DNA of 64,000 nt from Vitrella brassicaformis CCMP3155 (taxonomy: Eukaryota; Protista; Chromerida), in NCBI GenBank assembly GCA_001179505.1, contig CDMY01000345.1, positions 1 to 64,000 on the forward strand, read 5' to 3'. The position numbers were made by a program, and so were the translations under genes. Positions 26,977 through 50,448 of this stretch are shown here, piece by piece. The notes beneath the pieces were generated by a model. The model was given only the letters and a program-made list of their open reading frames with translations, was not told the DNA's origin and did no database searches. The first letter of the stretch is position 1, and each line of letters begins with the position of its first letter.

Positions 26977-27261
26977 CAGTCCGGGAAGAAGAGAGAGTCA
27001 GAGCAACAGTGAGATCTGGTGGGTGAGGGGTGAGATGCCTCGAGCGATGTGGTCCTTAGACACTGCAGAGCAACGCCGTTTCCTCTGATCAAGCACACAT
27101 TCACGTCAGGATCTCATGAGGATTGTCGCACAGGGAGCCCAACGCAACGCACGGAAGGCGAAGCCCCCAGTCTGCATGCGCCCCCCTTCCACAGCTCGCA
27201 GTTCGGCGGGACGAGATCTCCCGTCTTCAAGTGCTTCCCGCGGACACCATCGGTGTACGGC

Positions 27262-30249
27262 GAATCAATAAGCAGAGAATCCCACAGCTCACTGACAGTT
27301 CATCTCGTCGCTCTCTCCCCGCTGTGTGTGCACGTTGCTTCAAACAGGCTGTTTCGTCCCATCCCTGACAGAATGACGGTCCGCTGCATGCCTCCCCGAG
27401 TCCATCTTGTCGCCTTCTCTCGCCTCATCTCTATGGCGTTGCTGCTTCTGCCGCTGAACACGACGCAGACTGCCGCTGCCATCGGCAGCGACAGAGCGGC
27501 GAGTGGGCTCCAGCTGATGCGCATGCGTCCGCACAGAGGGAGGGGAGGCCCTCTAGAAGCCTTCCTGCCAAGTGTGCCGAGGGAGATGCCCCTGAGGGGC
27601 TTTGGGATGCGTCGAGATGAGTCTGTGAGGGCCATCCATGCCGGCAAGAGCCGAGAGGTGAGCTGACTGGACAGATCGACGGGGATCCACGCCATTCGTA
27701 CGAACGATTCCTTCTCTGTGCTTCTGCCTGTGTGTGTTTCGTTCAGCTGCGCCATCCATCCACTCCTTCTCCATCCCTGGGCACAATCAACAGAATGCGG
27801 CCTTCAGCTGCAACAGCCAGGTACATGAATGCACACAGACGGACAGGCAGATGGGATGCCGTCCATATGTGTGTGGCTTTCAGATGGCCGTCCATGCGGC
27901 GTCACACAGCGCTGCTCTCTGCCGTCGCCACACAGGCGGAAACGGCCGGCGATTCATCGGAGGCAGTCGGCAAGCCATCGCTGGAAGGTGGGCACACGTT
28001 CATCTCCCCATTGCCGACCACGCAGCAAGACTCATCGTGTGTGGTTCGTCTGCAGGTCGCGTGGAGCTGACAGTGGATGATCTGTTGCCCACGGCTGACG
28101 TGCCGCTCCCTCGAGTGGACTTGACGACAGAGCCTGAGGTGTTCATTGGGAGCGATTATATGGACAAGGCCTATTCGCTGCTGCTGCGCGAGTACGGGAG
28201 GTATGACGATTCGAGCGCGCGAGTGATGCCAATGTCATTCGTCGGCTTCCAAGGGGCTGGCAAGACCAGGATGCTGAAAGAGCTGTCTAAGAAGCTGCGA
28301 CAGGAAGGCATCCCCGCCATCTTTATCCCTTTTGGTGACGAGACCGAGTACAACATAGACACCGAAGGCGCCTCTACGCCGTTGTTCGACTCACTCAATC
28401 TGCGGCTGGCGTGGGCGGCGGCGACCGACGAGGCGCGAGCAAGGGTCGCACGGGCAGCCAATGTGGATGTCGACAAGCTGAACTTTACGATGTGGCTCAG
28501 GCACGCATTCATCAGCGAGCGCACCGCTCGTGAGTGGCTTGACTATCACCCGTGTCTGCTGCTTATCGACGATCTTCACCGCTTTGCGACTCTGCAGGGC
28601 GACGAACGCTATGAAGCGGAGGGCAAAGTGGGCAGATACCTCAAGTGCAATTTCCTTAATCGTCGTGACCGGCATTTCGTCTTCGCTGAGCCCAACAATG
28701 CGACCACTGTCAGCGGCGATTTTCTCTCCTTCCTCGATCCAATGTTCCGGAAGTGGCGTGACCTGCTCCGACCAGAGCTGCCTTTGATCGAGGGAAAAGG
28801 ATCTGGAGCACCTTCTGGACAGCAATGTGACTCGTGGGACGATTTGCTGGGCCGGGCGATCTCCTGGACTGGTATGGGAGATGTGTCAACACGGTGGCTC
28901 TCTGGAGGCCAAAGTCGGCAACGTCAGTTGTGTCGATCCACGGAGAAGATTTGGAGCGATTGGGGTATTATGCGATTTTCTGGCTACGGCGATGGAAGGG
29001 ACCAGCGGCTCTTTTGGGCCTAATATCGGCAACTGGACGGCATTGCTGAATGTGTTTGACGAAGTGAGGACTTCTCAGATTTGGCATGGACGACTGGCGT
29101 GGCACAGAACATACTCACTGCCTCCTTGCTATCTGGCCGGTATGTGCGCTTCTCTGGCGCAATGGGACTCTCTCAAGGAGAAAGCTGGCGAGTCGTTTTG
29201 TGAGGGCCTGAATGCTGTTGCCAGCAGCCTGCGGATGCTCAATCATGCTGAGGAGGGACGCCAGTGGGTCGGGCCGTGTACAGCGGCGATGCTCATACGA
29301 TTGCTGCAAGGCGAAATAGAGAGGCTGACCCGATGGAGCCTCCGCCCCCGCGAAGCTAACGAGGTCCCACCGCAGGTCGGCAATGTGCTTCCCGGCTCTC
29401 TCGTGATACCGTTGAGCGGGGACACACAGTCGATGGGCTGCAAATTTGGCAGGTACTTGAGCTCGGAGTGGAGAAACACTGAGGATGTCATTAAGGCGTT
29501 TGTCCGAAGGAGCGGACCTCCCTCTGAAAGATCCAGATGGGATCCTGACACCGTCTTCTTCTATCAGCCCAAGCCTGATGCCTTCGAGGACAAATATGAC
29601 TTTCTTGTCTTCGTGGTGGACAAGGATGGCAAGCTGAGCGATGTGTGGGGCTACAAGTGTGTCCGCGGCGACGCCTTACCGCCAGGAGAGGACGAGCCTT
29701 TTATCGACTATGAAGATCGCCGGCAGCAGTGGATGGAAACCAATGTGTGGCCGCCTCTGCCGGGCAATCCGCTGCCGGGCGCGGCCGATCTCTTCAGTGA
29801 TCCCGATATGCGGTCGATGGAGATCAAGTCAGTGTGGCTGCGAGGGGGTGGGGGGCGGGGAGAGAAGGCATTTGTGAGGAGGCAGGAGGATGGCCATGCG
29901 TGGATTGTGCCATGTCGAGACGATGTTGATGCACTACTCGGTCTGACACTGAACAGAACCTGTTCCTTTGTACGTTCGAGTGCTTGAGGCATGTGTGTTG
30001 TGTAAGGGGATGTAGATGGACATTTGGGTGTAGACCGGTTGTGTTGTCATTTGTAGTCAAGACGGAGACTTTTCATGTGTGAGAATGTAGACGTGAGACG
30101 CCTGGATGAGAGGATGAATCGTGTTCCTCCAAATCGATAGATCTCACATCAAGGTCACCTGCTGGAGCCAATGCAACTGCAAATGCGCCTTCCCTTCGCC
30201 TCCCTCGAGGAGGAGCGATCCCGCTCAAGCTCGCGAGTGAAGAACAAGG
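27262..30249 (+). repeat. Left arm of a ~3 kb inverted duplication (partner ~36300-39520)
   Basis: Colinear reverse-complement similarity covering the whole NTPase-REase gene, its 3' flank and the ~170 bp upstream of the PPR-TGM ATG. Confidence 0.9.
27373..29987 (+). pseudogene. Crinkler/RHS-like NTPase-REase paralog CR1 (signal+transit-like leader; +1 frameshift at ~28793)
   Basis: Walker A GFQGAGKT, Walker B LLLIDDL, C-terminal FFYQP..KYDFLVFV..VWGYKC. Three leader exons precede GRVELTVDD. Extra G (GAGGGAAAAGG versus GAGGAAAAGG in paralogs); a sequencing error cannot be excluded. Confidence 0.75.
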
Positions 30250-30265
30250 ACAGGTGTCAAAAGCC

Positions 30266-32685
30266 ATGAAGAGACAACGGGACTCACAGCCCCGAGCCAA
30301 CCAGAGGCAAAAAAGACGACGCTTCGCATCCGCGTCACGTTCCGACGAGCGGCATCACCGCGGGCGTGAGCAGCAGCAGCTGATTCACATCAACCAGCAG
30401 ATCAGTGCGTGCACGCGCAAGGGGAGACTCGGAGAGGCATTCCAGGTACAGGCAGGCAGACATGAGCAAAGACAGACAGACAGATGAGTGAATCCCGAGC
30501 GCGTGTCCTTGTATGGCGTTGCAGCACTTCGCCCGGATCAGTGAGCTCAACCTGAAGCCCACGGTAGGCAACACACACGCCGGACGGACACACACAAAAG
30601 CCACCCGCCACACGCATGGGAGTGGATGAATGTGACAACTGATGCGTGAATGACGTCATTCCTTTTGCCCTTTTCCTTCAGATAGTGGCCTACTCGTCGC
30701 TCATCAACTGCTGCGTTCGGTGCGGCGAGATGCAGCGGGCGGCTCACTTGTACGAGCGCATGCAGAATCAGGACGGCATTGCCCCGAACCTGATTGTCTA
30801 CACGACCATGGTCAAGGGGTACAGCAACCAGGGAAACATGGCAGAGGCAGAGAGACTCATGGACGCCATGACGGCCGCCGGCGTGCAGCCGAACATCCGG
30901 ACGCTCTCTGCTCTGATGAGAGGCTACCTCAGGACAGGCCAGCTCGACAGAGCCCTCAAAAATGCCAAGTAAGGTGGGCACGGCCAGGGGCCAGCAGACA
31001 CACACGGACACAGACACACGGATACTGCTGTCGATCTGGGCTTCTCTCTGCGTGTATCTCCAGGCATTTGGTAGAGGCCCAATCGGCAGGACTAATCGAT
31101 GGACAGCTGGCCCCTGAGGAGCATTCCGACAGCGGCGGCGGCGGCATAGCGGCCTGCCAGTCGTCTCTCGCCGCTTTGGTGCAGCTGCTCGCGCAAGCTC
31201 ACCTCATGAGCGACGCAGAGGGCCTGGTGCAGCTGATGGGCCGTCTGGTGGACAGCAGCAGGGCCACAGCAGAGGAGGGAGCCGTCAGCATCCTCCTGGC
31301 CGAGACTTACCACAACATCGCCGTCGCACATGCGCTCTTCGGCGAGAGGAAACGGGCGAGAGACTGCATCGGCAAGGCTCGAGCACTGTCCGGCTCTTCA
31401 CCCACACCACGATCAGCAGCGGCAGCGTCAGCTACCGCCAGCCAAGGCGGCGGTCAGCAGAGGAGTCAGCAGCTCTTCTTGAAGCATCGTGGCAAGGAGC
31501 TGAGGAGAGACCTGGACCATCTCGACAACAAGCTCACCACAGAGTCCGCCGTCACGGTCACACCAGACCAGCTCTTTTCCGCTTTCCGGCGCCTTGTCTG
31601 GACAGAGGGAAATGACGACAGCACACAAGACATAATGGTGGCGGAAGAGCGCGGCACGCACTATGGCCGTCGTCTGTCGTCCTTCGGTCTCACGGACTTC
31701 CTTCGCCGCCACACTCTTCGCGAGCTGAAAGGCACCGACACGTTGTCTGTGAGGGCGTCGGAGTTCTTTCGTGTGTATGGCGGCCAGCTGAGCCGACGGC
31801 AGCACCGGTTCAGGTGGGGGAGGGTGTTCGGTGAGGGGGGCGGGCTGCCCGTGAAGGTCGAGGTGTGCAGTGGGGGCGGCGAATGGGTCACTGCAAAGGT
31901 GGGCGTTCGATCAGGAGAGAGAGAGAGAGAGATGCCCAGTTGTTTGATTGTTTGCTTCCCCCTTGTGTTGTGTGTTACAGGCGAGTTCTGAGGTCGGTGT
32001 GAGCAACTGGGTGGCCATGGAACTCAGACACGACAGGTGCTACCAGGTATGTATGCCACACACGCCCACACGCACGCACAGCAAGCGAGCCGCCCGCCTG
32101 CCTCCATCTATGTGTGTGTGTGTGTCTCTGTCTGCAGATGTTCAGCCGCGGCAGCCTGGCCGCCTTGCCCAATCTGTGCATCGTGGGGGGCGATGCGCAC
32201 GCCGCCATGGTGCGGCACTTCTCTTCCGACAGTGTGGCCGAGGTGTGGGTGACCTTCCCGCAGCCGCCTCTGTGGTCAGGGGGGTCGGGCCACCTCCTCA
32301 CAGGCGACTTCTTCAACCAAATACGGCGGTGAGCGAGCTGAGCCAAAACATCAGACACGCAATACACCCACCCAAGTGTCTGTGTGTGTGTGCGTGTGTG
32401 TGTGTCAGGGTGCTGTGTGTTGGAGGAGTGGTGACGGTCGTGTCGGACAGTCTGCCCTACTGCCACACCATCCACCAGCAGCTGAGCTCTGCCACACAGC
32501 TGGTCTCGACGCACCCACACGAGCCGTGTGTGCGCGGCTGGCCGGACGGCTATGCGCCTCTGTCTGACACTGGAGAGGGGGCTGGAGAGGGAGAGGGAGA
32601 GGGAAGTGGCAGCAGCTATTTCGATCGCTTCTGGAGCGGCGGCAAGAGGACCAGCCGATACTTTGTGCGATGGAGGAAGGAATAA
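30266..32685 (+). CDS. PPR-TGM: pentatricopeptide-repeat protein with C-terminal tRNA (guanine-N7) methyltransferase (TrmB-like) domain
   Basis: About 4 PPRs (AYSSLINCCVRCGEMQRA, VYTTMVKGYSNQGNMAEA, TLSALMRGYLRTGQLDRA). TrmB-like motifs KVEVCSGGGEW, AMELRHDR, NLCIVGGDA, VWVTFPQPP, GGVVTVVSD. Confidence 0.85.
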
Positions 32686-33003
32686 TGTGGTGCGTGTGAG
32701 TGGTATTGCCGACATTGAGCAGCAGTCAGTTGATGGGGGATTGGTGGGAGGGGAGAGGGTCTCTATGCACATGTTGTTTGCACAGACAGACAGACAGACA
32801 TAAACCATAGAGAATGAACGTCAAGATTTTCACACACAGAAGAGCGGTATAATACCCACACACAGACTATGCACCCCCAGCCAGCACATCACATACACCC
32901 CCCGCCAGCACAAATAAATCAACATGTCAACAAGCATCCCGTCGCCGGCCAGACAGACAATGAACGACACAGCGCACAGCCGTCCACACACGCATAAACC
33001 CTC

Positions 33004-35382
33004 TCAGCAACACCAAATTGGCTTGAGGTCCGTTGTCTGGCTCTCAGCGCCCCCGTAGTCGATGACCGCCAGCCATCTGGCCGTGCCGCTTGCTATGGTG
33101 ACGCCAAACAGGGGGAACCAACACGACGATATGATAGACCTGACGACACACACAAAAAGCAAATTGCTCTGTGACATTTGCCCGTGGGCCAGCCGTCAGT
33201 GCTCTCACTCACAGTATGGGCATTGCGGGAAGGGCCATGTAGAGGTTCGTCCAGAGAGCCAGTGCCGCCACGCTGCCCGCCAGCACACACGTGGCCCTCA
33301 CGACCTGCGGCCCATCCGTCTTAGCACCACTGCTTGCCAAAGACACCAGCACCACCGTCAGCCAGCCGCTGCGCACATCGCATCCATCAGAGACAACAGA
33401 CAACACAACGGAGTGAGTCATGAGCGACCCATGTGGCCGTCTGTATGGTTCGGCGTACCTAATGAGAGTGGCCGTCTGTGTGATTGCAGCATCGCCACAC
33501 GTCATGAAGGTGGCCACGATGATGGTCATGATGAGGCCCCCGAGCGGCACAGCCGACAGGAGCGGCCGTGAGGTGGGCGGCAGGGCAAGCGTAAACACCA
33601 CCAACAGCAATGCCTGAGGGAACCAAGCAGCAAACACACACGCTGTCCATCCGGCTAGGCTGTCGGCCCATGTGTTTGTGCATGCCGTGTTCACCCACCT
33701 GTATGGGCTGCCAGATGCCGCTCAACAGGAGCACATACGCCGCCAGATAGGCGGCCTCAAACAAACAGGCCGAAGCCGCACTGCAGCCCTCACTAACCCC
33801 CCCATCTGCACACTTGCCCTCCTGATCGGTGACGGCCTCCTCACTCACGCCACCCTCCAGCTCGCTCTCACTGATGCTGTCGACCGTATTGGCGTCGCAC
33901 CATACACCGCCCCCTCCGCCGCCCATAGGTGTCACCGAGCCAGCCGTGTCCACCTCCCTAGGGGTCTTGTGGTCATGCTCCCGCTTCTCCTGGGCCACCA
34001 TACCCAATGCCACCAAGCCGACCGACTCGGCAGGCAGCGTGAGCGTGCTGTCGATGCACCCAGTTTGGCGCAGGATTGTGTGCCACATCGATCTTATGCT
34101 GCGCCTGGGGCGGGCGGATGGTGCGGTGGGTGGCGTGACGATGGCCGACAGAAGATGGGCGTCATGATAAATGTGGGTGTGCAGTGGGGAGGGGAAAATG
34201 GCGGCCATGTCGATGGCAGTCAGCGGCAGCAGACCCACCAGCAGGCACCTGTGGTCCTCCTGAGATACGAAGGAAGATAAAGACACACATACAAACATCA
34301 CTCATAGAAGAGGATATTTATGTGACCGGTGCTGACCTCCTGGATCGCTTGTGCCATCTCCTTGATAACCTCTCTCTCGCAGTCCCGGACTTTCCGCTCC
34401 CACTCGACAAAGACGCCCAGCCGAGAAGCGCGGCTGCATGACACACACACCACACCACACCACACCACAACACACCACACCACACACAATGGACGAATGA
34501 AATCGGCACCATCCATCCATCCACCCACTGTCTTGGCCTACTTACCCGACGTGGCCCACACCATTGATGAGCCTCTCCGGGGTGCCGATGACAATGCCGC
34601 AGTGGGTGGCCTCTCTCTTGCCCCCACCCATCCCCCGCTGCATGCTCATGCCACCGAAGCTGCCTTTAGTGAGCAGAGGATACACCGAAACCCCCCAGCC
34701 ACGCGCCTCATCGAATGGTAGGGCGAGCAGGCACTGGTCGGCCTGGACTGTGTGGGCGAGGATCGGCGATTCCTCGACGAACCGCATCAGTGAGGGGCAG
34801 ATGTCGATGGGGCCGCACTGCAACGCTCCCAGCAGCGTGTGCAGTGCCTGCCCCATGATGCAACTGGCGGCGATCTGCGTGTCCGCGTAATTAATGCTGG
34901 TGTGGTGATCCTGATTGTCAGTGATGAGGTAGACGCCATCTTGCATGGGCGTGAAGCCGATGGGCACCACGTCCCGCGCCTTGCTGGTGCAGCAGAAAGG
35001 CGCCTGTCGGGCCGACTGATCGTTTGGCGGCCTCAGCAACGGGAAAAGAACGTTGGTAGAGAGCGATGCCTCCTGAAGGCAAACACGCAAGGACAGCAAG
35101 AGAGACGACAGACAGGAAAGGCCATTCATCCACTTGGTTGCTCGCCACATGCACCCAGTCGCTCACCCGCGCTCCGTCTTGTTGCTCGTTTGTTGCCTTG
35201 GTGATGCTCGCCGCTGCAGCAGGAGTGCTGGCGGGGCTGTCTGCCTTTGCGAGTGTCGTTGTGGATGGCTGTTGCTGCTGGCCAGGGATGGGCGTGAGGC
35301 GAGTGGCGATGCGGCACAGCACATCCACCAAACAGAGGAGCTGTATCAGCCCCGTCAGCATGACCTGCGGGGGTTTCACACA

Positions 35383-35431
<49 letters not shown>

Positions 35432-36203
35432 GTTCATTGATGTACTGAATGAATGAGGCGTTGGGAAGGTGCATACCGATGCAGTCGATTTGTCCCGCAG
35501 ATGCTCATTCGCCAACAGCAGAGCCATCCTCACGACCTGCACGAATGAGTCACATCACATACACAGGTACATACAAGAGATGCAAGCACAGAGGATTTCG
35601 TTCACAGCGCACCTGCCAGCCTCGTCCGTGCAGCCCGACATGCGCCATGCCCAGTGCGGTCGTAGCAACCAGTAGCTGCCACTCCTGCCGGGCGACACAC
35701 ACGGACGCGAGGACGGCGACAGCACAGAGGGCCAGGCCGCGGCGCCAGACTGCAGGGCTGGTCATGCTGAGGAAGAGGCCCGCTGCACAAAGCAGCTGCA
35801 GCAAGTTGCTGAGCAGCCCCTGCAACCATGTCACACAGACGTCGCACGCGCGATATCGCCCCTCTCGTGTCCCTTTGCAGAGGTACCGAAGCAGTCGACT
35901 TGTCCGTCAGCATATCTTTGGCCACCAGCAGCGCCACTCTGACCACCTGAACGAACAGCACGAGAAATACAAGACACATGCATTCCCGCAGATGTGCACT
36001 GATTTCCTTGGAAGGACCTGCCAGCCAAGCCCTTTGAGGCGCAGATGCATCATGACTGAAGCCGCTCCCACGCACACACATGGGCCTATTATCGCTCGTT
36101 TGGCGTGCGTCATGAACCAATAAAGGGCGACAGCGCAGCCGATGACTGGCAGCAACATTCGCCGCACCGAGGCGGATGATACTGTGGGCCTCGCGGCAGC
36201 CAT
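33004..36203 (-). CDS. Hypothetical multi-pass membrane protein (gene model uncertain)
   Basis: Hydrophobic exons at both ends (LLPVIGCAVALYWF.., LLLVVFTLAL..GGLIMTIIVATF, VLAGSVAALALW), an internally duplicated N-terminal segment and a soluble middle. No family recognised. Confidence 0.45.
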
Positions 36204-36864
36204 TGGATGGCTGCGCAGCGGCTGAGCAGCTATGCGCAGGTTGTTAAGCCTTTAAGGCACTCGGGACTTGTCAAGGTCTGAACGGAATGCCTCCAGTAAC
36301 TTGTTTTTTCACTTGCGAGCTTGAGCAGGGATCGCTCCGCCTTTCGGAAGGGAGGCGAAGGGAAGGCGCATTTGCAGTTGCATTGGCTCCAGCAGGTGAC
36401 CTTGGTGTGAGATCTATCGACTTGGAGGAACCCTATTCATCCTCTCATCCAGGCGTCTCACGTCATGGACCACGTTGCCTGCCGATTTTCGCGTGGACGT
36501 CGTGTGCCAATTGTTGTGAGAGAGGTGAGCCTCAGCACGTCATGAACGGAACACCCACTCGCACGGCAAGCCACGACAACTGTATATAGGGACATGTTCT
36601 TGCTCAGTGTCACCTCTTGCTGTGTGTGCATGTTTACGTGGCTATGCGTTGGCCATAAGGGCCTCTGGTGGAAAAGGGCCGCAAAAATCACCCACACCCA
36701 CCCACATGTCCACACAAATCATTTCACACGGCATAGGGCTTGACCGACAGTGTGATAGCGCATCATGAGCAAACACTGAAAAGTCTCCGTCTTGACTACA
36801 AATGACAACACAACCGGTCTACACCCACATGTCCATCTACATCCCCTTACACAACACACATGCC

Positions 36865-39408
36865 TCAAGCACTCGAACGTACAAAGGAACAGGTTCTGTT
36901 CAGTGCCAGACCGAGTAGTGCATCAACATCGTCTCGAGATGGCACAATCCACGCATGGCCGTCCTCCTGCCTCCTCACAAATGCCTTCTCTCCCCGCCCC
37001 CCACCCCCTCGCAGCCACACTGACTTGATCTCCATCGACCGCATATCGGGATCACTGAAGAGATCGGCCGCGCCCGGCAGCGGATTGCCCGGCAGAGGCG
37101 GCCACACATTGGTTTCCATCCACTGCTGCCGGCGATCTTTATAGTCGATAAAAGGCTCGTCCTCTCCTGGCGGTAAGGCGTCGCCGCGGACACACTTGTA
37201 GCCCCACACATCGCTCAGCTTGCCATCCTTGCCCACCACGAACAGAAAAAAGTCATACTCATCGTTGAAGGCATCAGGCTCAGGCTGATAGAAGAAGACA
37301 GTTCGAGGATCCCATGTAGATCTTTCAGAGGGAGGTCCGCTCCTTTCGACAAACGCCTTGACGACATCCTCAGTGTTTCTCCACTCCGAGCCGAAGTACC
37401 CGCCAAATTTGCAGCCCGTCGACTGTGTGTCCCCGCTCAACGGTATCACGAGAGAGCCGGGAAGCACATTGCCGACCTGCGGTGGGACCTCGTTAGCTTC
37501 GCGGGGGCGGAGGCTCCATCGGGTCAGCCTCTCTATTTCGCCTTGCAGCAATCGTATGAGCATCGCCGCTGTACACGGCCCGACCCACTGGCGTCCCTCC
37601 TNNNNNNNNNNNNNNNNNNNNNNNNNNNNNNNNNNNNNNNNNNNNNNNNNNNNNNNNNNNNNNNNNNNNNNNNNNNNNNNNNNNNNNNNNNNNNNNNNNN
37701 NNNNNNNNNNNNNNNNNNNNNNNNNNNNNNNNNNNNNNNNNNNNNNNNNNNNNNNNNNNNNNNNNNNNNNNNNNNNNNNNNNNNNNNNNNNNNNNNNNNN
37801 NNNNNNNNNNNNNNNNNNNNNNNNNNNNNNNNNNNNNNNNNNNNNNNNNNNNNNNNNNNNNNNNNNNNNNNNNNNNNNNNNNNNNNNNNNNNNNNNNNNN
37901 NCCAGGAGATCGCCCGGCCCAGCAAATCGTCCCACGAGTCACATTGCTGTCCAGAAGGTGCTCCAGATCCTTTTCCTCGATCAAAGGCAGCTCTGGCCGG
38001 AGCAGGTCACGCCACTTCCGGAACATTGGATCGAGGAAGGAGAGAAAATCGCCGCTGACAGTGGTCGCATTGTTGGGCTCAGTGAAGACGAAATGCCGGT
38101 CACAACGATGAAGGAAATCGTACTTGAGGTATCCACCCACTTTGGCATCCGCTTTAGAGCGTTCGTCGCCCTGCAGAGTTGCAAAGCGGTGAAGATCGTC
38201 GATGAGCAGCACACATGGCTGACGGTCCAGCCACTCACGCGCAGTGCGCTCGCTAATGGATGCGTGCCTGAGCCACATCGTAAAGTTCAGCTTGTCCACG
38301 TCCACATTGGCTGCCCGTGCGACCCTTGCTTGCGCCTCGTCGGTCGCCGCCGCCCACGCCAGCCGCAGATTGAGTGAGTCGAACAACGGCGTAGAGGCGC
38401 CTTCGGTGTCTATGTTGTACTCGGTCTCGTCACCAAAAGAGATAAAGACAGCGGGGATGCCTTCCTGTCGCAGCTTTTTAGACAGCTCTTTCAGCATCAG
38501 GGTCTTGCCAGCGCCTTGGAAGCCGACGAGTGACATTGGCATCACTCGCGCGCTCGAATCGTCATACCTCCCGTACTCGCGCAGCAGCAGCGAATAGGCC
38601 TTGTCCATATAATCGCTCCCAATGAACACCTCAGGCTCTGTCGTCAAGTCCACTCGAGGGAGTGGCACCTCAGCCGTGGGCAACAGATCATCCACTGTCA
38701 GCTCCACACGACCTGCAGACGAAAGTGACACACCAGACAAGATGAGTCTTCCTGCCTGGTCGTCAATGGGGAGATGAACGTGTGCCCACCTTCCAGCGAT
38801 GGCTTGCCGGCTGCCTCCGGTGAATCGCCGGCCGTTTCCGCCTGTGTGGCGACGGCAGAGAGCAGCGCTGTGCGACGTCGCATGGACGGCCATCTGAAAG
38901 CCACACACATATGGACGGCATCCCATCTGCCTGTCCGTCTGTGTGCATTCATCTACCTGGCTGTTGCAGCTGAAGGCCGCATTCTGTTGATTGGGCCCAG
39001 AGATGCAGAATGAGTGGATGGATGACGCAGCTGAACGAAACACACACACACAGGCAGAAGCACAGAGAAGGAATCGTTCATGCGAATGGCGTGGATGCCC
39101 GTCGATCTGTCCAGTCAGCTCACCTCTCGGCAAGTGCCGGCATGGATGGCCCTCACAGACTCATCTCGACGCATCCCAAAGCCCCTCAGGGGCATCTCCT
39201 TCGGCACACTTGGCAGGAAGGCTTCTAGAGGGCCTCCCCTCCCTCTGTGCGGACGCATGCGCATCAGCTGGAGCCCACTCGCCGCTCTGTCGCTGCCGAT
39301 GGCAGCGGCAGTCTGCGTCGTGTTCAGCGGCAGAAGCAGCAACGCCATAGAGATGAGGCGAGAGAAGGCGACAAGATGGACTCGGGGAGGCATGCAGCGG
39401 ACCGTCAT
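36865..39408 (-). CDS. Crinkler/RHS-like NTPase-REase paralog CR2 (signal+transit-like leader; spans an assembly gap)
   Basis: Same exon structure as CR1, GFQGAGKT, VLLIDDL, EYDFFLFV..VWGYKC. No lesion is visible outside the gap. Confidence 0.75.
37602..37901. other. Assembly gap (300 N) inside CR2
   Basis: Run of n; the equivalent stretch in CR1 is about 380 bp, so the gap size is nominal. Confidence 1.
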
Positions 39409-40135
39409 TCTGTCAGGGATGGGACGAAACAGCCTGTTTGAAGCAACGTGCACACACAGCGGGGAGAGAGCGACGAGATGAACTGTCAGTTAACTGTGTG
39501 ATTCTGTGCTTGTTGATCCGTCCTTGCGAACCTGCGTGAGCGAAGCCGTGCTTGTAGAGGCACGGTTTGCGCACCGTGCTCGTGCAAGCTCAGCTGCGAT
39601 CCCTGCTTGAAAAGGGTGTGAAAACGGTGCAATTAGTTGAAGTAGGTCGTATGGTCAACTGATGTGAAATACATCGACTTGGAGCGGCAGCATTCATCAC
39701 TTCCCTCAGCACAGCGGCCACACATCTGACGCATCTGCCTGTACATGTCGCACTGAGGCAGGCAGGCAGGCAGGCAGGGAGAAAAGAGCTTGATCATTGA
39801 AGTTGGATGCAACCATCGGCCATTCACATTCACACAGCTCATTCCAAACACAGACAGCTGGAGCCGATCACAGTGGCCCCGCCGGTTTAATTTCTACCGA
39901 CTCACAGACAACACGCACGACCACATCCTTATAGTTTGTCCATCTACTAATTCCTTCATTTGGCTACACAGAGACTTGAAAAACAACACAGACACCCGAA
40001 AAAAGCCACTAATGAATGGTCTGTCTGTTTGTCTGTTTGTCTGTCTGTCTGTCTAGCCGCATGCATGAACGTCAGGCAGCCATCCATCCATCCATCCATC
40101 CATCCACGCAGCTATGGAGATGTCTACACACATAT

Positions 40136-41756
40136 CTACAGCTCATCTTTGCTTCCTTTCTGTCCTCCATCGCCCTCCCCCGGCCGCATCCCCTCGTCAA
40201 GCGCACCGAAGCCGTCATGGTCACTGTGCCCGTTGTGCGCATCTCTGAAGGCAACGAGGAACGTCTCAGCGGGGCTTGATCGGAACTTGCTCGACCTGGC
40301 CCAGAAGACCAGATTCTGTCTGCGGCCGCTCTCCAAGGGGTGTGCGCCGTGCCAGTGCTGCCCCACGTGCAGCAGCGCTCCTCCAGGCAGGTGAGCCACC
40401 GACGGCTGGCGGGCCTTCTCGTCCTTCTCGTGTGGGTGGTCTCTCTGGCCTTTGAAGTAGACCTTGCCGCCGGTGAAGGTCTCGTCGCCCAGACAGATAT
40501 TGAGTGTAACCTCGGACAGATCCATGTGTTTGTCGAGGTGGATGTCCTCCTTGGCCGAGTAGGCTATGGTGAAGGCGTGATGGCTGTCGAGCGAAGAGCC
40601 GCCCCAGTCGGGAAACGCCGCACTGGCCAGTGGGCGGACGACGGAGGTCATCAGGCCGTCGAGCCACTCCCGCATCCCGAGCTCCTCGAGCACAAAGCCG
40701 TAGTTGTTCATCGTGTTGGGCCGCGTGAAGTTGAGCTGCCCGCTCTGCTGCTGGTACGCGTGGGAGAGTTCCTCGGTGATCAGTCGCCTGAACGTCGGCG
40801 TCAAGACCTCTGGGATGTAGTAGACATCACTGGCGCCCTCCACCGGCTGAAGCGCCGCCATGACGGCCTCGTTGCTGCCACTGCTGAGCGCGCCTCTCAG
40901 GTCAGCCGATATGTCCCGCTCGTAGTCGAAGTGGCGCAGCTGCTCGTGCAGGGGCTGGTACTGGGCGGCGATGAGGGCCTTCTTGTCTTCAAGAGCGGCC
41001 TCTTCCTCTGACCTGTGGTGGGCCTCCTTCCACTGTCTGTGCTTGGCCAGGCTGCGCAGGTGGGATGACGGGAGGGGCGGGGAGCCGCCTTGTTCATCGT
41101 CGGTGTGTCTGGGGGTCAGCAAGATGTGGGTCTGCCGCTCCGTGAGCGGCACGCCAGCAGGGGTGACGAGCCGGAAGGTCAGCTCGTGGAAGCCCTGCTT
41201 CAGAATGATGCTGTCATCGATCACCACCTGCACGCATCCACCCATCCATCCATCCATCCGTCAGGCATGAGAGCATACAGGCTGTGGTCGGCCGACCTGC
41301 TGTGTTGGGTGTCTGTCGGCTGCTGGTCGTTGTGCCTTTGCCCGGCATTCACTCGCGTCGCTCCTGGTGGGGCAGAAGGCGTGCTTGTGGACTGACTTGT
41401 GGGGCGTGGGCGGCACATCGTACAGCCAGATGTCCGAATAACCACCTGAGTGACAAGAGAAAGACAGACAGGGAAGAAGACGCGAATCAATCACACGCAC
41501 ACTATGGTGCATCCAATGGCCATTTTCCCGTCCACGGCTATTCACCTGATCTGACGGCGACCTCCAGATGTGCGCCATGCGGCACACTGAGCCCTCTCTC
41601 CAGCCGCACTACAATCGGAACGTGTCGGCCCAGCCCAGGAACATCTCGGATGACCTCGAACGGTCGCGGATGAATGATCTCCATGTTGGCGCCAGCGGAC
41701 GAGGCAAGGTGGACGAGAACCCACAGGATAAGCACCATACAGCAGGAAAGGCCCAT
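40136..41756 (-). CDS. OGFOD2-like 2-oxoglutarate/Fe(II) dioxygenase with signal peptide and C-terminal KDEL
   Basis: Signal MGLSCCMVLILWVLVHLASSAGA; RPNTMNNYG, LDSHHAF, HMD..EVTLNICLG..FTGG, HWHGA, GRRQNL; ends GSKDEL*. Confidence 0.85.
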
Positions 41757-42111
41757 GGAATTGTCGTCTTTGCTGCAATCTTCACTGGCGTGCCAGCGTG
41801 GATGCTGCACAGATCCACGTAAGTCTACTCTTGCGTGCGCACCGGATGACGTGGGAATGATTGGGATTTGTGACGTCATCGCGATCCACTCAGCAGCTCG
41901 CAGTGAAATCTCCTCCGAGTCTGAAACCGCTCTCTGTCGCCAGACGGCGCATACACGTGCCTCTACAAGCACAGCTTCGCTCACGCAGGTTCGCAGGCAT
42001 GGATCAACAAGCACAGAATCACACAGTTCAGTTCATCTCGTCGCTCTCTCCCCGCTGTGTGTGCACGTTGCTTCAAATAGGCTGTTTCGTCGGACTCCCA
42101 TCCCTGACAGA

Positions 42112-44721
42112 ATGATGGTCCGCTGCATGCCTCCCCGAGTCCATCTTGTCGCCTTCTCTCGCCTCATCTGTATGGCGTTGCTGCTTCTGCCGCTGAACAC
42201 AACGCAGGCGGCCACTGCCATCGGCAGCAACAGAGCGGCGAGTGGGCTCCAGCTGATGCGCATGCGTCCGCACAGAGGGAGGGGAGGCCCTCTAGAAGCC
42301 TTCCTGCCAAGTGTGCCGAAGGAGATGCCCCTGAGGGGCTTTGGGATGCGTCGAGATGAGTCTGTGAGGGCCATCCATGCCGGCAAGAGCCGAGAGGTGA
42401 GCTGACTGGACAGATCGACGGGGATCCACGCCATTCGAATGGTTCCTTCTCATTCAGCTGCGCCATCCATCCACTGCTTCTCCATCCCTGGGCCCAATCA
42501 ACAGAATGCGGCCTTCAGCTGCAACAGCCAGGTAGATGAATGCACACAGACGGACAGGCAGATGGGATGCCGTCCATGTGTGTGTGGCTTTCAGATGGCC
42601 GCCCATGCGGCGTCACACAGCGCTGCTCTCTGCCGTCGCCACACAGGCGGAAACGGCCGGCGATTCATCGGAGGCAGCCGGCAAGCTATCGCTGGAAGGT
42701 GGGCGAACATTCACTCACGCAAAGTTGACATAGGCAGAGACAGTCATCTTGTCTGTGTTATCACTTTTCGTCTGCAGGTCGCTTGAAGCTGACAGAGGAT
42801 GATCTGTTGCCCACGGCTGACGTGCCGCTGCCTCGAGTGGACTTGACGACAGAGCCTGAGGTGTTCATTGGGAGCGATTATGTGGACAAGGCTTATTCGC
42901 TGCTGCTGCCCGAGTACGGGAGGATGGACTCGTCGAGCGAGCGAGTGATGCCAATGTCATTCGTCGGCTTCCAAGGGGGTGGCAAGACCAGGATGCTGAA
43001 AGAGCTGTCTAAGAAGCTGCGACAGGAGAGCATCCCCGCTATCTTTATCCCTTTTGGTGACGAGACCGAGTACAACATAGACACCGAAGGCGCCTCTACG
43101 CCGTTGTTCGACTCACTCAATCTGCGGCTGGCGTGGGCGGCGGCGACCGACGAGGCGCGAGCACGGGTCGCACGGGCAGCCAATGTGGACGTGGACAAGC
43201 TGAACTTTACGATGTGGCTCAGGCACGCATCCATCAGCGAGCGCACCGCGCGTGAGTGGCTCGACCGTCAGCCATGTGTGCTGCTCATTGACGACCTGCA
43301 CCGCTTTGCGACTCTGGAGGGCGGCGAACGCTCTGAAGCCGAGGGCGAAGTGGGTGAATACCTCAAGTACGATTTCCTCAATAATTCTGACCGGCACTTC
43401 GTCTTCACTGAGCCCAACAATGCGACCACTGTCAGCCGCAAGTTTCTTCGGTTCCTCGATCCAATGTTCCAAAAGTGGCGTCACCTGCTCCGGCCAGAGC
43501 TGCCTTTGATCGAGGAAAAGGACCTCAAACACTTTCTGAACAATAATGTGACTCGTGGAACGATTTGCTGGGCCGGGCGATCTCCTGGACTAGTGTGGGA
43601 GATGCGTCAGCACGGTGGCTCTCTGGAGGCCAAAGTCGGTAACGTCTCTCGTGTCGATCGGAGAAGATTTGGAGCGATTGGGGTATTATGCGATTTTCTG
43701 GCTACGGCGATGGAAGGGACCAGCCGCTCTTCTGAGCCTAATATCGGCAACTGGACGGCATTGTTGAATGTGTTTGACGAAGTGAGGACTTCTCATATTG
43801 GGCATGGACGACTGGCGTGGCACAGAACATACTCACTGCCTCCTTGCTATCTGGCCGGTATGTGCGCTTCTCTGGCGCAATGGGACGCTTTGAAGGAGAA
43901 AGCTGGCGAGTCGTTTTGTGAAGGACTGAATGCTGTTGCCAGCAGCCTGCACATGCTCAATCATGCTGAGGAGGGACGCCAGTGGGTCGGGCCGTGTGCA
44001 ACGGCGGTGCTCATACGATTGCTGCAAGGCGAAATAGCGAAGCTAACCCACTATGGCCCCCGCGATGCTGACGAGGTCCCACCGCAGGTCGGCAACGTCC
44101 TTCTCGGTTCTCTCGTGATACCGTTGAATTACGACAAAGAGGCGATGGGCTGCAAATTATATATATATTCTTTTTGGCGGGTACTTCAGTAGCTCGGAGT
44201 GGAGAAACACTGAGGAAGTCATTAAGGCGTTTGTCGAGAGGAGCGCACCTCCATGCTCTGCACGATTCGAATGGGATCCTGACACCGTCTTCTTCTATCA
44301 GCCTGAGCCCGATGCCTTCGAGGGTATCTATGACTTTTTTGTGTTCGTGGTGGACAACGATGGCAAGCTGACCGATGTGTGGGGCTACAAGTGTGTCCGC
44401 GAAGACGTCTTACCACCAGGAGAGGACGAGCCTTTTATCGACTATAAAGATCGCCGGCAGCAATGGATGGAAACCAATGTGTGGCCGCCTCTGGCCGGGG
44501 ATCCGCTGCCGGGCGCGGCCGACCTCTTCAGTGATCCCGATATGCGGTCGATAGAGATCAAGTCAGTGTGGCTGCCAGGGGGTGGGGGGCGGGGAGAGAA
44601 GGCATTTGTGAGGAGGCAGGAGGATGGCCATGCGTGAATTGTGCCATCTCGGGACGATGTTGATGCACTACTCGGTCTGGCACTGAACCGCACATGCTCC
44701 TCTGTGCGTTGCAGTGCTTGA
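42112..44721 (+). pseudogene. Crinkler/RHS-like NTPase-REase paralog CR3, C-terminal domain disrupted
   Basis: Intact leader and NTPase (GFQGGGKT). 16-bp AT-rich insertion at ~44159-44174 causes a frameshift, and TGG>TGA creates a nonsense codon at 44635-44637. Confidence 0.8.
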
Positions 44722-45469
44722 ATCTTTGTGGGTCAAGTTTTGCTGTGGTGTAAAAAACGGGTATGCTTATGTGGGTGGGTGAGGATGAGTTTTGCCGTCT
44801 TTTACCAGTGAGGATAGATAAGTAGCGCATGTCCTCACATTGATGACTTTTGTCTTCCCGTCACGTGACTTTTTCATACTGCTACAGTCTCGTGACAGTC
44901 CAGCAGATGACACTCGTATTCAGTCAATGCGTATATTGCGTTTATTGCGTGTTCCCCTACTCGGGCATCTGTCTGTGCTAGTTGACAACCCACTCGTGTG
45001 CTTCACCTATAAGATGGCTGGCTGGTGCAAATGGGCTGGCTCATGCGAACCAACACGAAATGTCGGCAGCACAGAGTACAGACACCCATCCCCTCATTCA
45101 GGCATAGTTTCAGCTTCAGAAAATAACGAATTAATGTATGCAAAACATGCAGGCCGCCAGGCACACACACACACACACATAAACACATAAACACCCATTC
45201 GTTCATGCAGATGGGTGCTTAGCACCCCTCCCACCACAGCACAGCACAGCACAGCACCAAAAAGACCCACAGCACAGCCCAGCCACACAAAGATATGTAT
45301 GTGTATATGTGGACACACAACACGCACGAGTGACGTCCATCCAGTGACTGACACGTATGTCTGTACGTGTCTGTCCACACGGGTGGGTCAACCGACGCGA
45401 TGTATCTGAGCACAGGTAGTTACTGACATCAACTTAACACACACAGCACGCACACACAGATGGCCTCCC

Positions 45470-46479
45470 TCACGGCATGTTGACCTGCTCCACCCCAGCC
45501 ACACTCATGAGTTCAATCTCGTAGCGCACCACATGCAGCACCTCGAGCTCATCGGCCACGAAGGTCCCGTTGCCACCGAACACACCGTCGCCGTACGCAT
45601 CCCTCACGCCCACATAGCCCGCAGGGACGCGGTCTTTGGTAATGTACTGGAGACACCTGCGGATGTCGGCAGCCGGGCGGTCTTGGCCGGAGGGGCGGTC
45701 AAGGCCCCCGTAGCCGAGCCACAGGCGCCCCCCCACCACCACATTAGCACCCACACCCGAAGCTTTCCTCCCCGCCACCTCGATGTACCTCCGGCGCTCG
45801 TCGACGGGGATCTTGGTCGCATTCGAAAAGTGCCCGGCCAGCGAGAAGTGCCAGGTCTCTCCGGACCAGTACACCCTGTAGTCTTCGGGCACGGCGGGGA
45901 GGTAGAGGCCGGTCCCGACGAAGGCGCCAAAGACGTAATCGTCCTTGCGGATGAGAAACACCAGGCCGTCCTTGGTGTTGACCCTTCGCAGCATGTTGCT
46001 GTAGCTGCTCCCGTGCACAGACGACCTACAGGTCAGTCACAGTCACACAGACACACACACAGCTGGTCAATGCCTCCTCTGGTCGATGTGTGTGTGCGTG
46101 TTGCCTGGCTGCCTACACAGATCACATCACATGTGCTTGTGCACACCTGTAGACCGATTCGACGCGCGTTTCGTTGACCAGCAGGCGACGCAGGTCGTCA
46201 TACTCCGACTGCGACAGGGAGGAGCCAACCGGCACACGGTCAACTGCCTGCACACGACGAACCTACAGGCAAGGCAAGGCAAGGCAAGGCAAGGCCAATC
46301 AACACACACGTGAGCGCCATTTGAAGGGGGGAGTGCACCACAGCAAGATCTGGCCAGATCACGGGTGTGTGCGCTTGCATGGTACACACCTGTGGACGAC
46401 ACGCCACGAAGGGGGTGAGGGTAAGGACGAGGGTGAGGGAGAAGGCCAACAGCATGGTGATCTCACGCACAGTCACCAT
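45470..46479 (-). CDS. TLDc-domain protein with signal peptide
   Basis: Exon 1 MVTVREITMLLAFSLTLVLTLTPFVAC, exon 2 GSSLSQSEYDDLRRLL..VYR, exon 3 SSVHGSSY..LVFLIRKDDYVFGAFV..FVADELEVLHV, resembling the chromerid-expanded TLDc type. Confidence 0.8.
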
Positions 46480-46713
46480 GTCGCGTCGAGGGAGGAAGGA
46501 CGGCTGACGAGTGAGGTAAGTGATGCGGAGGGGCTGAATATCAGAGATCTGGCCTTCACGCGTGGCAGGGGGTGAGGAGGAAGCCGGAAGGGATGGGAGG
46601 GGAGAGTGAGGACAGTTTCAAGCGCAGAGCCCTAAGCGTAAAACTTTGTGCCTTCTGTGAAACGCTTTATGCTGCAGCCTAGGCAAGATAACCAACCAAC
46701 CAACACAGCCGCC

Positions 46714-47856
46714 ATGTCTGCTGCTGCGTGTGTGTTTGCCCTTCTCCTCGCATGCCCTGCCTCCCTCGTGAGCGTGTCAGCTCAGGACCTCAGTGCCGTC
46801 CAGCAGAACTATAAAGGGGCCTTCGATGGCAAAGTAAGCACAGATCTGGCTCATCATGGGCAACCGCAACCAACACGCGGCACAAGAGATGCACGCACTG
46901 GTATGTGCTTCCTTTCATCAGCTGCAGTTTGGCTCTTCCCCCTGCCTGCTTGTGGTCGACCTCGTCAACGCATACCTGTAACTTGCACTCTCTCTCTTCC
47001 CCTCTCTCGGTGTCACTCACTCCCCGTCTGCCTGTCTGTCTGTCTGTTTACGTCCGTGCAGTCGAGAGGGTTCGCCTTTGTATGCGGCAGAGGGCGGCAA
47101 ACAGGCCCTAGCAGGCACAGAGCGGCTGCTGACATCGGCCAGGCAGCTGGGCATCCCCGTCGTCTTCACGGCCGTCAAGTACGCCAAGAAGGCAAACGGC
47201 AAAGACGCTGGCGTCTGGTGGCGCAAGGTGCCCGCACTATCGGCTTTCGTCGAAGGACAGGTGGGCACACACACACACGCATTTCTTATTAGATGGATAC
47301 CAGATTAGATACCAGATTAGATGGACACGACCACGATTGTCCTATTTAGAGTAGATGTGAGCTTTCTTTTTGAATGCGTGTGTGCAGGAGCTGGCCGAGT
47401 TCCCGCCCTCCCTCACTCCGCTGCCGAGTGAGGTCGTGTTGACCAAGCAGTACGCCTCGAGCTACTTCGGGACGTCGCTGGCCAGCATGCTCACCGCCAT
47501 GAAGGTCGACACGGTCGTCATCGCAGGCGTCAGCACCTCTGGATGGTCAGTCAGCCAGCCAGGCGGGCAGGCAGCCGACATGGCTCAGACAGACCAAGCT
47601 TGCACCCCTCCCTCTGTGTCGGTCTATGTGTCTTTGTAGCATCCGTGCGACAGCGCTCGACACTCTTCAGAGCGGCTTTGTTCCAGTGGTGGTGCGTGAT
47701 GCGGTCGGCGACCGGCGCCCAGAGGTGCACGAGGCCAATCTGTTCGACATACAGGCCAAGTACGGGGAGGTTCGCATGGCTGATCAAGTGCTGGCGTACT
47801 TCGAACAGGTGGCCGGCACCAAGAAGGCGCCGCCCACACGAGCAGAGGAGCTGTGA
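46714..47856 (+). CDS. Isochorismatase-family cysteine amidohydrolase (N-carbamoylsarcosine/maleamate amidase-like) with signal peptide
   Basis: Triad LLVVD, VLTKQYASSYFGT, GVSTSG|CIRATALD (Cys codon formed across an intron), VVRDAVGDR, ANLFDIQAKYGEV; ends AEEL*. Confidence 0.88.
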
Positions 47857-48355
47857 GCGGCCGACGTGGTATGAGCGGTGACTACACGCCATGTATGTAT
47901 GTGCATGTGTGAGGAATACATTTATGTCCGCGCTGCGTTGATGAGAGCGAATCGAGCAGAGTGGCGAATCAGTCAGAGAGTGCATAGAGAGTGCATGGCC
48001 TGAGTGAGGGGGAAGACGTTTGTCCTGCCTATGAGTGCGAGTCAGTGATAGTGCTTCGAAGACAGGTCACAGGCAAGCATTTGGAGGAGAGAGGATGCAT
48101 GTACATGTATTCATCTGTGAGTGAGTCATAAGACAGATGCCCTTTTTCTGGCCATTGTCTGTCGGCCAACTTTATTAGTACATCTCGAACAGCGTGTTTT
48201 GAGTGGCTCTGCGTTTGTCGTAACGGCCCCTACGACTTACAGCCACCCACATGCGCATATGAATCATCATACACCATATTCGGCTTGACCGACAAGCAAA
48301 CACAGGCAAGTATCAGCCTTGAAAACTACACACTACAAATGACGACACAACTAAT

Positions 48356-50448
48356 CTACACCTGCATGCCTGAAGCACTCGAACGGACAAGTGAGCATGT
48401 ACGGTTAAGCGCCACGCCAAGTAAGGCATCAACATCGTCCCGAGATGGCAGAATCCACGCATGGCCATCCTCCTGCCTCCTCACAAATGCCTTCTCTCCC
48501 CGCCCCCCACCCCCTCGCAGCCACACTGACTTGATCTCCATCGACCGCATATCGGGATCGCTGAAGAGGTCGGCCGCGCCCGGCAGCGGGTTGCCGACTA
48601 GAGGCGGCCATACCTCAGTTTCCATCCACTGCTGCCGGCGATCTTTATAGTCGATGAAGGGCTCGTCCTTTCCTGGCGGTAAGGCGTCGCCGCGGACACA
48701 CTTGTAGCCCCACACATCGCTCAGCTTGCCATCGTTCTCCACCACGAAGACAAGAAAGTCATATTTGTCCTCGAAGGCTGCATCAGGCTCAGGCTGATAG
48801 AAGAAGACAGTTCGAGGATCCCATATGGATCCTTCAGAGGGAGATTCGCTCCTATCGACAAACGCCTTGACGACATCTTCAGTGCTTCTCCACTCCGAGC
48901 TGAAGTACCCGCCAAATTTGCAGCCCATCTGCTGTTTGTCGTATTTCACCGGTATCACGAGAGAACGGGGAAGAACGTTGCCGACCTGCGGTGGGACCTC
49001 GTCAGCATCGCGGGGGCCATGGTGGGTCAGCCTCTCTATTTCGCCTTGCAGCAATCGTAGGAGCACCGCCGCTGCACACGGTCCGACCCACTGGCGTCCC
49101 TCCTCAGCATGATTGAGCATCCGCAGGCTGCTGGCAACAGCATTCAGCCCCTCACAAAACGACTCGCCAGCTTCCTCCTTCAAAGCGTCCCATTGCGCCA
49201 GCCTCGTGCACATACCGGCCAGATAGCAAGGAGGCACTAAGTATGTTCTCTGCCGCGTCAGTCGTCCTGGCCGTTTATATGAGGTCCTTTCTTCGTCAAA
49301 CACATTCAAGAGTGCCGTCCAGTTGCCGATGTCAGGAACTGACCAGCCGAAGGTCGCTTCTCCTTCCATAGCCGTAGCCAGAAAATCGCATAATACCTCA
49401 ATCGCTCCAAATATAATCGATGGATTGACACGAGAGACGTTGCCGACTTTGGCCTCCAGAGAGCCACCGTGCTGACGCATTTCCCACACTAGTCCAGGAG
49501 ATCGCCCGGCCCAGCAAATCGTTCCACGAGTCACATTGCTGTCCAGAAGGTGCTCCAGATCCTTTTCCTCGATCAAAGGCAGCTCTGGCCGAAGCAGGTC
49601 ACGCCACTTCCGGAACATTGGATCGAGGAAGGAAAGAAAATCGCCGCTGACAGTGGTCGCATTGTTGCGCTCAGTAAAGACGAAGTGCCGGTCACGACGA
49701 TTAAGGAAATTGCACTTGAGGTATTCACCCACTTCGCCCTCGGCTTTACAGCGCTCGCCGCCCTCCAGAGTCGCAAAGCGGTGAAGATCGTCGATAAGCA
49801 GCAGACACGAACGATAGCCAAGCCACTCACGCGCGGTGCGTTTGCTGATGGATGCGTGCCTGAGCCACATCGTAAAGTTCAGCTTGTCGACGTCCACATT
49901 GGCTGCCCGTGCGACCCTTGCTCGCGCCTCGTCGGTCGCCGCCGCCCACGCCAGCCGCAGATTGAGTGAGTCGAACAACGGCGTAGAGGCGCCTTCGGTG
50001 TCTAAGTGATACTCGGTCTCGTCACCAAAAGAGATGAAGATGGCGGGGATGCCCTCATGCCGCAGCTTCTTGGACAGCTCTTTCAGCATCCTGGTCTTGC
50101 CAGCCCCTTGGAAGCCGACAAATGACATTGGCATCACTCGCGAGCTCGACGAGTCCATCCTCCCGTACTCGCGCAGCAGCAGCGAATAGGCCTTCTCGAC
50201 ATAGTCGCTCCCAATGAACACCTCAGGCTCTGTCGTCAAGTCCACTCGAGGGAGCGGCACGTCAGCAGTGGGCAACAGATCATCCACTGTCAGCTCCACG
50301 CGACCTGCAGACGAAAGTGACACACCAGACAAGATGAATCTGCTGCCTGGTCGTCAATGGGGAGATGAACGTGTCACGAACCGTCTGCTTCTTGTGGCCT
50401 TTTGTGTGCCTGCTGGTCTTGTGTCTCGAACTCCTGTGGCCTCTTCAT
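48356..50448 (-). CDS. Crinkler/RHS-like NTPase-REase paralog CR4 (intact; short basic header exon)
   Basis: Uninterrupted ORF 48356-50332. Upstream exon ATG 50448 encodes MKRPQEFETQDQQAHKRPQEAD-G, with a phase-1 GT donor at 50381 joining GRVELTVDD. Confidence 0.8.

Follow-up and report, generated by a model that had tools for sequence, protein, structure and literature searches.

Chromerid algae are the closest photosynthetic relatives of apicomplexan parasites. In the chromerid Vitrella brassicaformis CCMP3155, positions 1-64000 of contig CDMY01000345.1 (109,775 bp), a stretch of 64,000 nucleotides (nt) referred to here as the window, contain four copies (CR1 to CR4) of a gene whose predicted product, a P-loop nucleoside triphosphatase (NTPase) followed by a domain with a restriction endonuclease (REase) fold, resembles the body of Crinkler and RHS proteins. 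The copies were located by a tblastn search, for which the annotated CR4 protein (P0001, 671 aa) served as query, and by self-blastn of the window. Both searches recover the four homologous units, in + - + - order, that a preliminary description of the window had reported, and every copy contains the quoted motifs: GFQG[AG]GKT and [LV]LLIDD, which are the Walker A and Walker B motifs, RHFVF, FFYQP, YDF, and WGYKCV. A fifth copy, CR5 (gene model P0002), with both Walker motifs likewise intact, lies at contig positions 82,472-84,572 (L001:9970-12067), about 18.5 kb beyond the window end. The units are 2.0-2.8 kb in size, and each is placed singly, in one orientation or the other, among ordinary host genes, as had also been described. 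These neighbors are unrelated and single-copy: a fusion of PPR and TrmB-type methyltransferase sequences, a 730-aa protein without recognized identity, an OGFOD2-like oxygenase, a TLDc protein, an isochorismatase, and a Rad17-like protein.

The CR1 unit (+ strand), delimited by tblastn, self-blastn, and alignment, extends from 27261 to 30080, or to 30248 when compared with CR2. It consists of a 5' region of about 800 nt (27261-28050) that is common to CR2 and CR3, a body (~28046-29987) that is homologous to exon 2 of CR4, and a tail, up to 30248, that is common to CR2 only. CR2 lies on the - strand at 39572-36773, or down to 36300 when this tail is included. CR3 (+, 41947-44721) shares its 5' region with CR1 and CR2 and is followed by 330 nt (to 45053) found otherwise only with CR5. 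CR4 (-) occupies 50448-48356. As read from its sequence, the CR4 gene contains two exons: exon 1 (50382-50448), which encodes 22 residues and is missing in CR1-3 and present in CR5, and exon 2 (50304-48356), separated from exon 1 by a 77-nt GT..AG intron (50305-50381).

Three regions can be recognized within the CR4 protein. The P-loop NTPase domain (49472-50304, residues 23-300) includes the Walker A motif GFQGAGKT (50093-50116) and the Walker B motif LLLIDD (residues 190-195). Foldseek matches to this domain include Orc1/Cdc6, STAND NTPases (Apaf-1 and NLRs), the archaeal ATPase 2qen, and the transposition ATPases MuB, TnsC, and IstB. The middle region (49112-49471, residues 301-420) is composed of helices and a beta hairpin in the AlphaFold model and is read as a winged-helix-like linker; it would then fit the architecture described for Crinkler/CR proteins, namely NTPase, helix-turn-helix (HTH), and REase [Zhang et al. 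2016, as summarized in PMC5289972]. The REase-fold domain (48359-49111, residues 421-671) completes the protein. All of these regions are encoded on the - strand.

An exhaustive phmmer search with CR4 yielded 178 relatives. All the close ones are V. brassicaformis proteins encoded on other contigs (30-40% identity), several of which have MMETSP transcripts, and in a tree they form a Vitrella clade (support 100/99) with Chromera velia as its neighbor. The family is thus a chromerid lineage-specific expansion, in which CR1-5 constitute one young subfamily on a long branch. In remoter relatives the NTPase was matched directly, and a match to the C-terminal domain needed one profile round. A protein of the diatom Nitzschia (P0090), which contains the PF20147 Crinkler header (29.6 bits versus a cut-off of 24.6), matches both the CR4 NTPase (E 5.7e-8) and the C-terminal domain. 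In addition, the AlphaFold model of CR4 (pLDDT 86, pTM 0.89) aligns over its whole body with a Crinkler-family Atlas cluster (TM 0.59/0.55 over 522 residues). CR4 therefore contains the CR module, that is, a P-loop NTPase, HTH, and REase homologous to those of header-bearing members, and the earlier assignment to a Crinkler/RHS-type NTPase followed by an REase-fold domain is supported by the header-bearing homologue and the whole-body match, together with the E...D...QxK motif and the fold search presented below. Pfam and NCBIfam gave only sub-threshold AAA matches for CR4 (Pfam AAA_22, AAA_16, and ATPase_2, E 0.004-0.06), and the PDB yielded no sequence match to CR4 or to a profile of its C-terminal domain.

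A separate model of the C-terminal domain (pLDDT 83) has an order of secondary-structure elements that fits an alpha-beta-beta-beta-alpha-beta core. In a VIA fold search, about 30 of the top 50 chains were PD-(D/E)xK nucleases (best Z 4.4, TM 0.36-0.43), with matches that include SgrAI, Can2, Card1, McrC, NgoMIV, FokI, EcoRI, NucS, and VRR_NUC. The named Atlas structural neighbors of the domain also belong mostly to PD-(D/E)xK families (PDDEXK_7, NotI, PDDEXK_4, PDDEXK_2, McrC, and Mrr_cat). The comparison of AlphaFold models proposed in the preliminary description therefore agrees with an REase fold, which is supported, at the level of the model, by the consistency of these individually weak matches and not by any single one.

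The PD-(D/E)xK signature consists of an acidic residue on helix 1, a D on strand 2, and (D/E/Q)xK on strand 3. In an alignment of 36 family members, E is present in 31/36, D in 36/36, Q in 34/36, and K in 31/36, the E lying on helix 1, the D opening strand 2, and QxK lying on strand 3. Vitrella paralogues such as P0010 and P0161 retain E/D/QxK. CR4 is the only row of this alignment with V, D, K, and V at these positions: V429 (49085-49087), D538 (48758-48760), K557 (48701-48703), and V559 (48695-48697), all on the - strand, the third-strand motif being K557-C-V559. CR1-3 have the same V, D, K, V signature, and CR5 has V, D, K, A (WVGPC, YDF, GYKCA), so that three of the four signature residues are replaced in all copies. 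Because the helix-1 acid and the Gln are gone, nuclease activity of all five copies is doubtful, and loss of cleavage would be the simpler reading. Since every copy carries the replaced signature, its loss probably predates the amplification. The suggestion that the cluster represents a working nuclease conflict system is not supported, in view of these replacements, the lack of a Crinkler header in the copies, and the breaks in at least two of the four.

It had also been proposed that each unit encodes the protein. The motifs are indeed found in all of them; however, an uninterrupted gene is present only in CR4, the one demonstrably intact copy, whose two exons form a 671-codon frame. In CR1 the frame is broken by a 1-nt insertion after 28791 (28789-28793, +), where GGG replaces the GG of CR2, CR3, and CR4; the extra G falls at about residue 268 of the CR4 protein, and a matching +1 letter is seen at this break in a contig of DNA run X2 (aligned to CR4 at 49566). 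CR3 contains a 16-nt, AT-rich insertion after 44156 (44157-44172, +), which shifts the frame at about residue 485, within the C-terminal domain, as well as a stop at 44635-44637 in the codon register of CR4. CR5, which has a CR4-type exon 1, undergoes a frame change near residue 383-392. CR2 is interrupted by an assembly gap (37602-37901, nominally 300 N) that hides residues ~294-423, and its sequenced halves (residues ~23-293 and ~424-667) are both open. The gap flanks are collinear with CR1 and CR4, in which the equivalent stretch measures 383 nt (CR1, 28868-29250) and 389 nt (CR4, 49105-49493). Taken at its nominal 300 N, the gap puts the halves one base out of register (frames -1 and -2), and a length of 383 or of 389 nt restores a common frame; thus, an intact CR2 is possible. 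Within the window, then, one copy is intact (CR4), one is left undecided by the gap (CR2), and at least two are broken (CR1 and CR3). Multiplication of the units by an assembly artefact or haplotig was considered and ruled out: the copies differ by 4-14%, their flanks are unique, and contigs of DNA runs from different studies match the CR4 flanks exactly.

The units had been called near-identical, which is not the case. Between pairs of copies, 86-96% of nucleotides are identical overall, and in blocks of 100 nt the figure varies from 75 to 100%; the number of synonymous substitutions per synonymous site (dS) among the copies is 0.07-0.25. CR1 and CR2 are the closest pair (95-96% identity). 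Informative sites are divided 39/13/8 among the quartet topologies and fall into 12 runs, versus the 31.8 expected by shuffling, a value reached in 0/10,000 shuffles. This deficit of runs points to a mosaic ancestry and therefore to gene conversion or recombination among the copies. The limits of homology also vary with the pair compared, giving three distinct 5' limits and three distinct 3' limits. On the 5' side, CR4 and CR5 have in common an upstream region that contains exon 1 and is different from the ~800 nt of CR1, CR2, and CR3; on the 3' side, CR1/CR2 and CR3/CR5 each possess the pair-specific extensions described above. Homology of CR1-3 to CR4 begins 7 nt inside the CR4 intron (at 50374). 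Consequently, the 5' exon was exchanged at the intron, with a breakpoint at the exon 1/intron border.

No terminal inverted repeats were detected at the unit ends, where the best end-to-end inverted match, 8-12 nt, is within the range of random window pairs, and no transposase or integrase domain is present among the genes neighboring the units. Given the pair-specific limits, the chance-level inverted matches, and the absence of a nearby transposase, the pattern fits successive local duplications plus conversion, as judged from sequence comparison, and not a transposon with defined ends. For the two possibly intact copies, CR2 and CR4, the ratio of nonsynonymous to synonymous substitution (dN/dS) lies at 0.3-0.5, with 0.37 for the whole gene and 0.33 for the C-terminal domain, so that some constraint seems to have remained on the copies. 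In comparisons with CR4, dN/dS is 0.32-0.47 for the NTPase domain and 0.33-0.40 for the C-terminal domain. Values of up to 0.66-0.78 occur in the middle region.

Crinkler proteins bear an N-terminal header, and no PF20147 match to it was found in CR4 (Pfam, E up to 10), in which only 22 residues precede the NTPase module. The N-termini of the tested Vitrella and Chromera paralogues are Pfam-negative as well. CR4 exon 1 encodes a basic, hydrophilic peptide in which the motif KRPQE occurs twice; direct reading of its sequence reveals no hydrophobic stretch that could serve as a secretion or translocation signal. At the site of the KRPQE motif the closest paralogue, P0006, has KKRK. The ~800-nt region 5' of CR1-3 (27261-28050, 38788-39572, and 41947-42766) is 94-97% identical among the three, above the level at synonymous sites of the gene body. 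This region is annotated as a multi-exon N-terminal leader that starts with a short hydrophobic stretch, MALLLLPL. Its few variable sites fall 4/2/3 by codon position, without a third-position excess; the leader may be either coding or a promoter/untranslated region that conversion has kept similar. Expression was assessed with the Logan contigs of four runs, of which X1 and X3 are DNA-like and only X11 is RNA-like. X11 contains a 220-nt CR4-specific contig and two contigs with private letters of CR1, at a depth of 9-14; the comparison depth in a stretch between annotated genes (46276-46472) is ~5.

From these observations, we consider it reasonably probable that CR1-5 are a local cluster of paralogues encoding a headerless Crinkler/RHS-type body, which undergo gene conversion, are partly decayed, and have an eroded nuclease signature. 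Such a cluster would have grown by successive local duplications in both orientations, after loss of the nuclease signature, and would later have been homogenized in patches by gene conversion and not by transposition, with several copies now becoming pseudogenes. The surviving protein would be intracellular and probably nuclear, as suggested by the basic KRPQE exon and by the KKRK of the closest paralogue. It may function as an NTP-driven, nucleic-acid-binding switch, in which the nuclease-fold domain binds and probably no longer cuts.

Several points weigh against this reading. The REase fold is built on many weak matches (Z <=4.4); Foldseek of the C-terminal domain model against the PDB gave nothing significant (best E 0.07), and Pfam, run on 36 C-terminal domains, contains no family that covers the domain. 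K557 precedes the usual lysine by two residues and faces the same side of the strand; in the model, it may belong to a rearranged, working site. Nuclear localization and nucleic-acid binding of CR4 are predicted properties. Support for transcription of CR4 and CR1 is weak, since the depth in X11 is inseparable from DNA carry-over, and among the Logan contigs of the four runs none spans the CR4 intron. Finally, homology ends sharply at the stop codon in all copies, which would also fit a small mobile unit with unrecognized ends.

The preliminary description had proposed, as one possibility, an active selfish element. In such a case the units would be spreading locally, and the NTPase and REase-fold domain would provide their own transposition machinery, by analogy with TnsC and TnsA of Tn7. 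The compactness of the units, their single insertion among unrelated genes in both orientations, and the resemblance of the NTPase fold to MuB, TnsC, and IstB are all as expected for such an element, and Crinkler/RHS proteins are considered to be derived from transposons [Zhang et al. 2016, as given in the review PMC5289972]. However, the units have no common termini, their 5' and 3' limits being of three kinds each, and there are neither terminal inverted repeats above chance nor a transposase or integrase nearby. Furthermore, the nuclease signature is replaced in every copy, a dS of 0.07-0.25 indicates no recent burst, and two or three of the five copies, including at least two of the four in the window, are broken. 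We therefore regard an active mobile element as very unlikely. Scarcely less unlikely is that the copies are working Crinkler-like toxins or effectors, in which an NTP-regulated nuclease is sent to another cell or organelle by means of alternative 5' exons (a leader for CR1-3, an exon resembling a nuclear localization signal for CR4). In favor of such a role, header-bearing Crinkler proteins have a homologous body, D538 is kept, a lysine at 557 is near the usual place, dN/dS is below 1 in the C-terminal domain, and the 5' region of CR1-3 is highly similar among the copies (94-97%) and begins, as annotated, with a short hydrophobic stretch. Yet Pfam detects a Crinkler header neither in CR4 nor in the tested Vitrella and Chromera paralogues, the 22-residue exon 1 of CR4 is hydrophilic, and the family residues E429, Q557, and K559 are all replaced. 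In addition, CR1 and CR3, which bear the leader, are broken, and the variable sites of the leader (4/2/3) show no third-position excess, so that it may or may not be coding.

It is also possible, but in our judgment unlikely, that the whole cluster is non-functional debris whose members remain similar only through gene conversion, CR4 being the copy that has not yet been hit. In favor are the breaks in CR1, CR3, and CR5, the lost catalytic signature, the scarcity of RNA evidence, and a dN/dS that rises to 0.66-0.78 in the middle region. Against such a state stand the lower dN/dS values relative to CR4 in the NTPase (0.32-0.47) and C-terminal (0.33-0.40) domains, the intact Walker motifs in all copies, the 671-codon frame and canonical intron of CR4, and the open frames of both CR2 halves. 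A more speculative idea, to which we assign little probability, is that the CR subfamily comprises pseudo-nucleases that arose from Crinkler-type toxins and are kept for a new role, for instance as NTP-switch sensors, or as antidotes against those nuclease paralogues of the Vitrella expansion that are still canonical. Otherwise identical bodies would then be sent, through a swap of 5' exons at the first intron, to the nucleus for CR4 and CR5 and to the secretory pathway or plastid for CR1-3. If true, this would constitute a eukaryotic toxin-antidote or immune-sensor system made from one gene family.

A headerless, partly decayed paralogue cluster, the reading preferred here, can be compared with several known systems. 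Crinkler (CRN)/CR effectors have the same three-part body, a P-loop NTPase, a helical/winged-helix linker, and an REase-fold domain [Zhang, Burroughs, Vidal, Iyer, Aravind 2016; via PMC5289972]. Unlike these effectors, CR4 has no header domain, LxLFLAK-type motif, or signal peptide, only its basic exon of 22 residues; the CR copies have three of the four nuclease signature residues replaced; and the host, Vitrella, is a free-living photosynthetic alveolate and not a pathogen. The trypanosomatid RHSP proteins (PF07999), placed in the same CR superfamily by Zhang et al. [per PMC5289972], are, like the CR cluster, a multicopy, partly pseudogenized, headerless, and intracellular family. A PF07999 Atlas cluster is among the nearest to the C-terminal part of CR4 by language-model features (score 0.85, a lead only). 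However, Pfam detects no PF07999 match in CR4 (E up to 10) or in 67 homologues (E up to 0.001), and there are no retroelement insertions in or beside the CR copies.

The same order of domains, Walker ATPase, winged helix, and REase-fold, is found in prokaryotic ATPase_2/AAA_14 proteins with a C-terminal DUF234, Mrr, or Hjc-type domain, such as PABY2304 (PDB 2qen). The 2qen structure is among the better Foldseek matches to CR4 (TM by target 0.45), and ATPase_2/AAA_14-type clusters are among its Atlas neighbors. However, the Pfam scores of CR4 are sub-threshold, its gene contains an intron, and the relationship is remote. A precedent among free-living eukaryotes is AACRNL, a header-degenerate, Crinkler-like gene that is amplified in teleost genomes [PMC12957317]. 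It is a Crinkler-derived protein that lost its delivery header and multiplied within the genome, that has an ADP-ribosyltransferase toxin domain, and whose spread is reported to have occurred via adjacent hAT transposons. The CR copies, in contrast, have an NTPase-REase body with an eroded enzymatic signature, and no flanking transposons were found.

The Crinkler/RHS NTPase-REase kind to which the CR cluster belongs is already known, and no new kind of system is revealed. What is new here is that no copy has a recognizable header, and that the copies possess a V, D, K, V/A signature, pair-specific unit ends, and a mosaic ancestry. Chromerids join the lineages in which the Crinkler/RHS NTPase-REase body has expanded greatly without a header. 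The cluster shows, as a clean case in nature, such a body that has lost its nuclease signature and yet was duplicated, remains under some constraint, and is homogenized by gene conversion; it may be useful for asking what NTPase-REase modules do in free-living eukaryotes.

Some additional features were observed in and around the window. Marine sediment metagenomes of 2023-2025 (runs X12 and X14-X18) contain 5-25% of the sampled 31-letter words of CR4, and therefore Vitrella or a very close relative with a CR4 gene was present in those samples. A 125-nt segment in or next to the Rad17-like gene region (54946-55068) recurs just upstream of CR5 (L001:9677-9800, 87.5% identity). Between the window end and CR5, at ~74.5-75.8 kb of the contig (L001:18801-20087), are two adjacent open reading frames. 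The first encodes, by eye, a small beta-grasp-like N-terminal domain, and the second contains a GD...VVVEAK motif typical of PD-(D/E)xK nucleases; Pfam gave no match for either. Within the window, a low-complexity repeat of 45-55 nt is present in both orientations, with 86-100% identity, at 5994-6039, 8964-9014, 13272-13316, 16660-16711, 35377-35428, and 57437-57491. Two 170-nt segments (3231-3400 and 24636-24809) form an inverted repeat pair, 89% identical and 21 kb apart, and neighboring this pair is a 150-nt match between 3406-3555 and 21484-21632. The isochorismatase gene (46669-48485, +) is represented in X11 by a spliced contig, with GT..AG introns at 47258-47384 and 47545-47638, and its 3' end overlaps by ~125 nt with that of CR4, the gene convergent to it.

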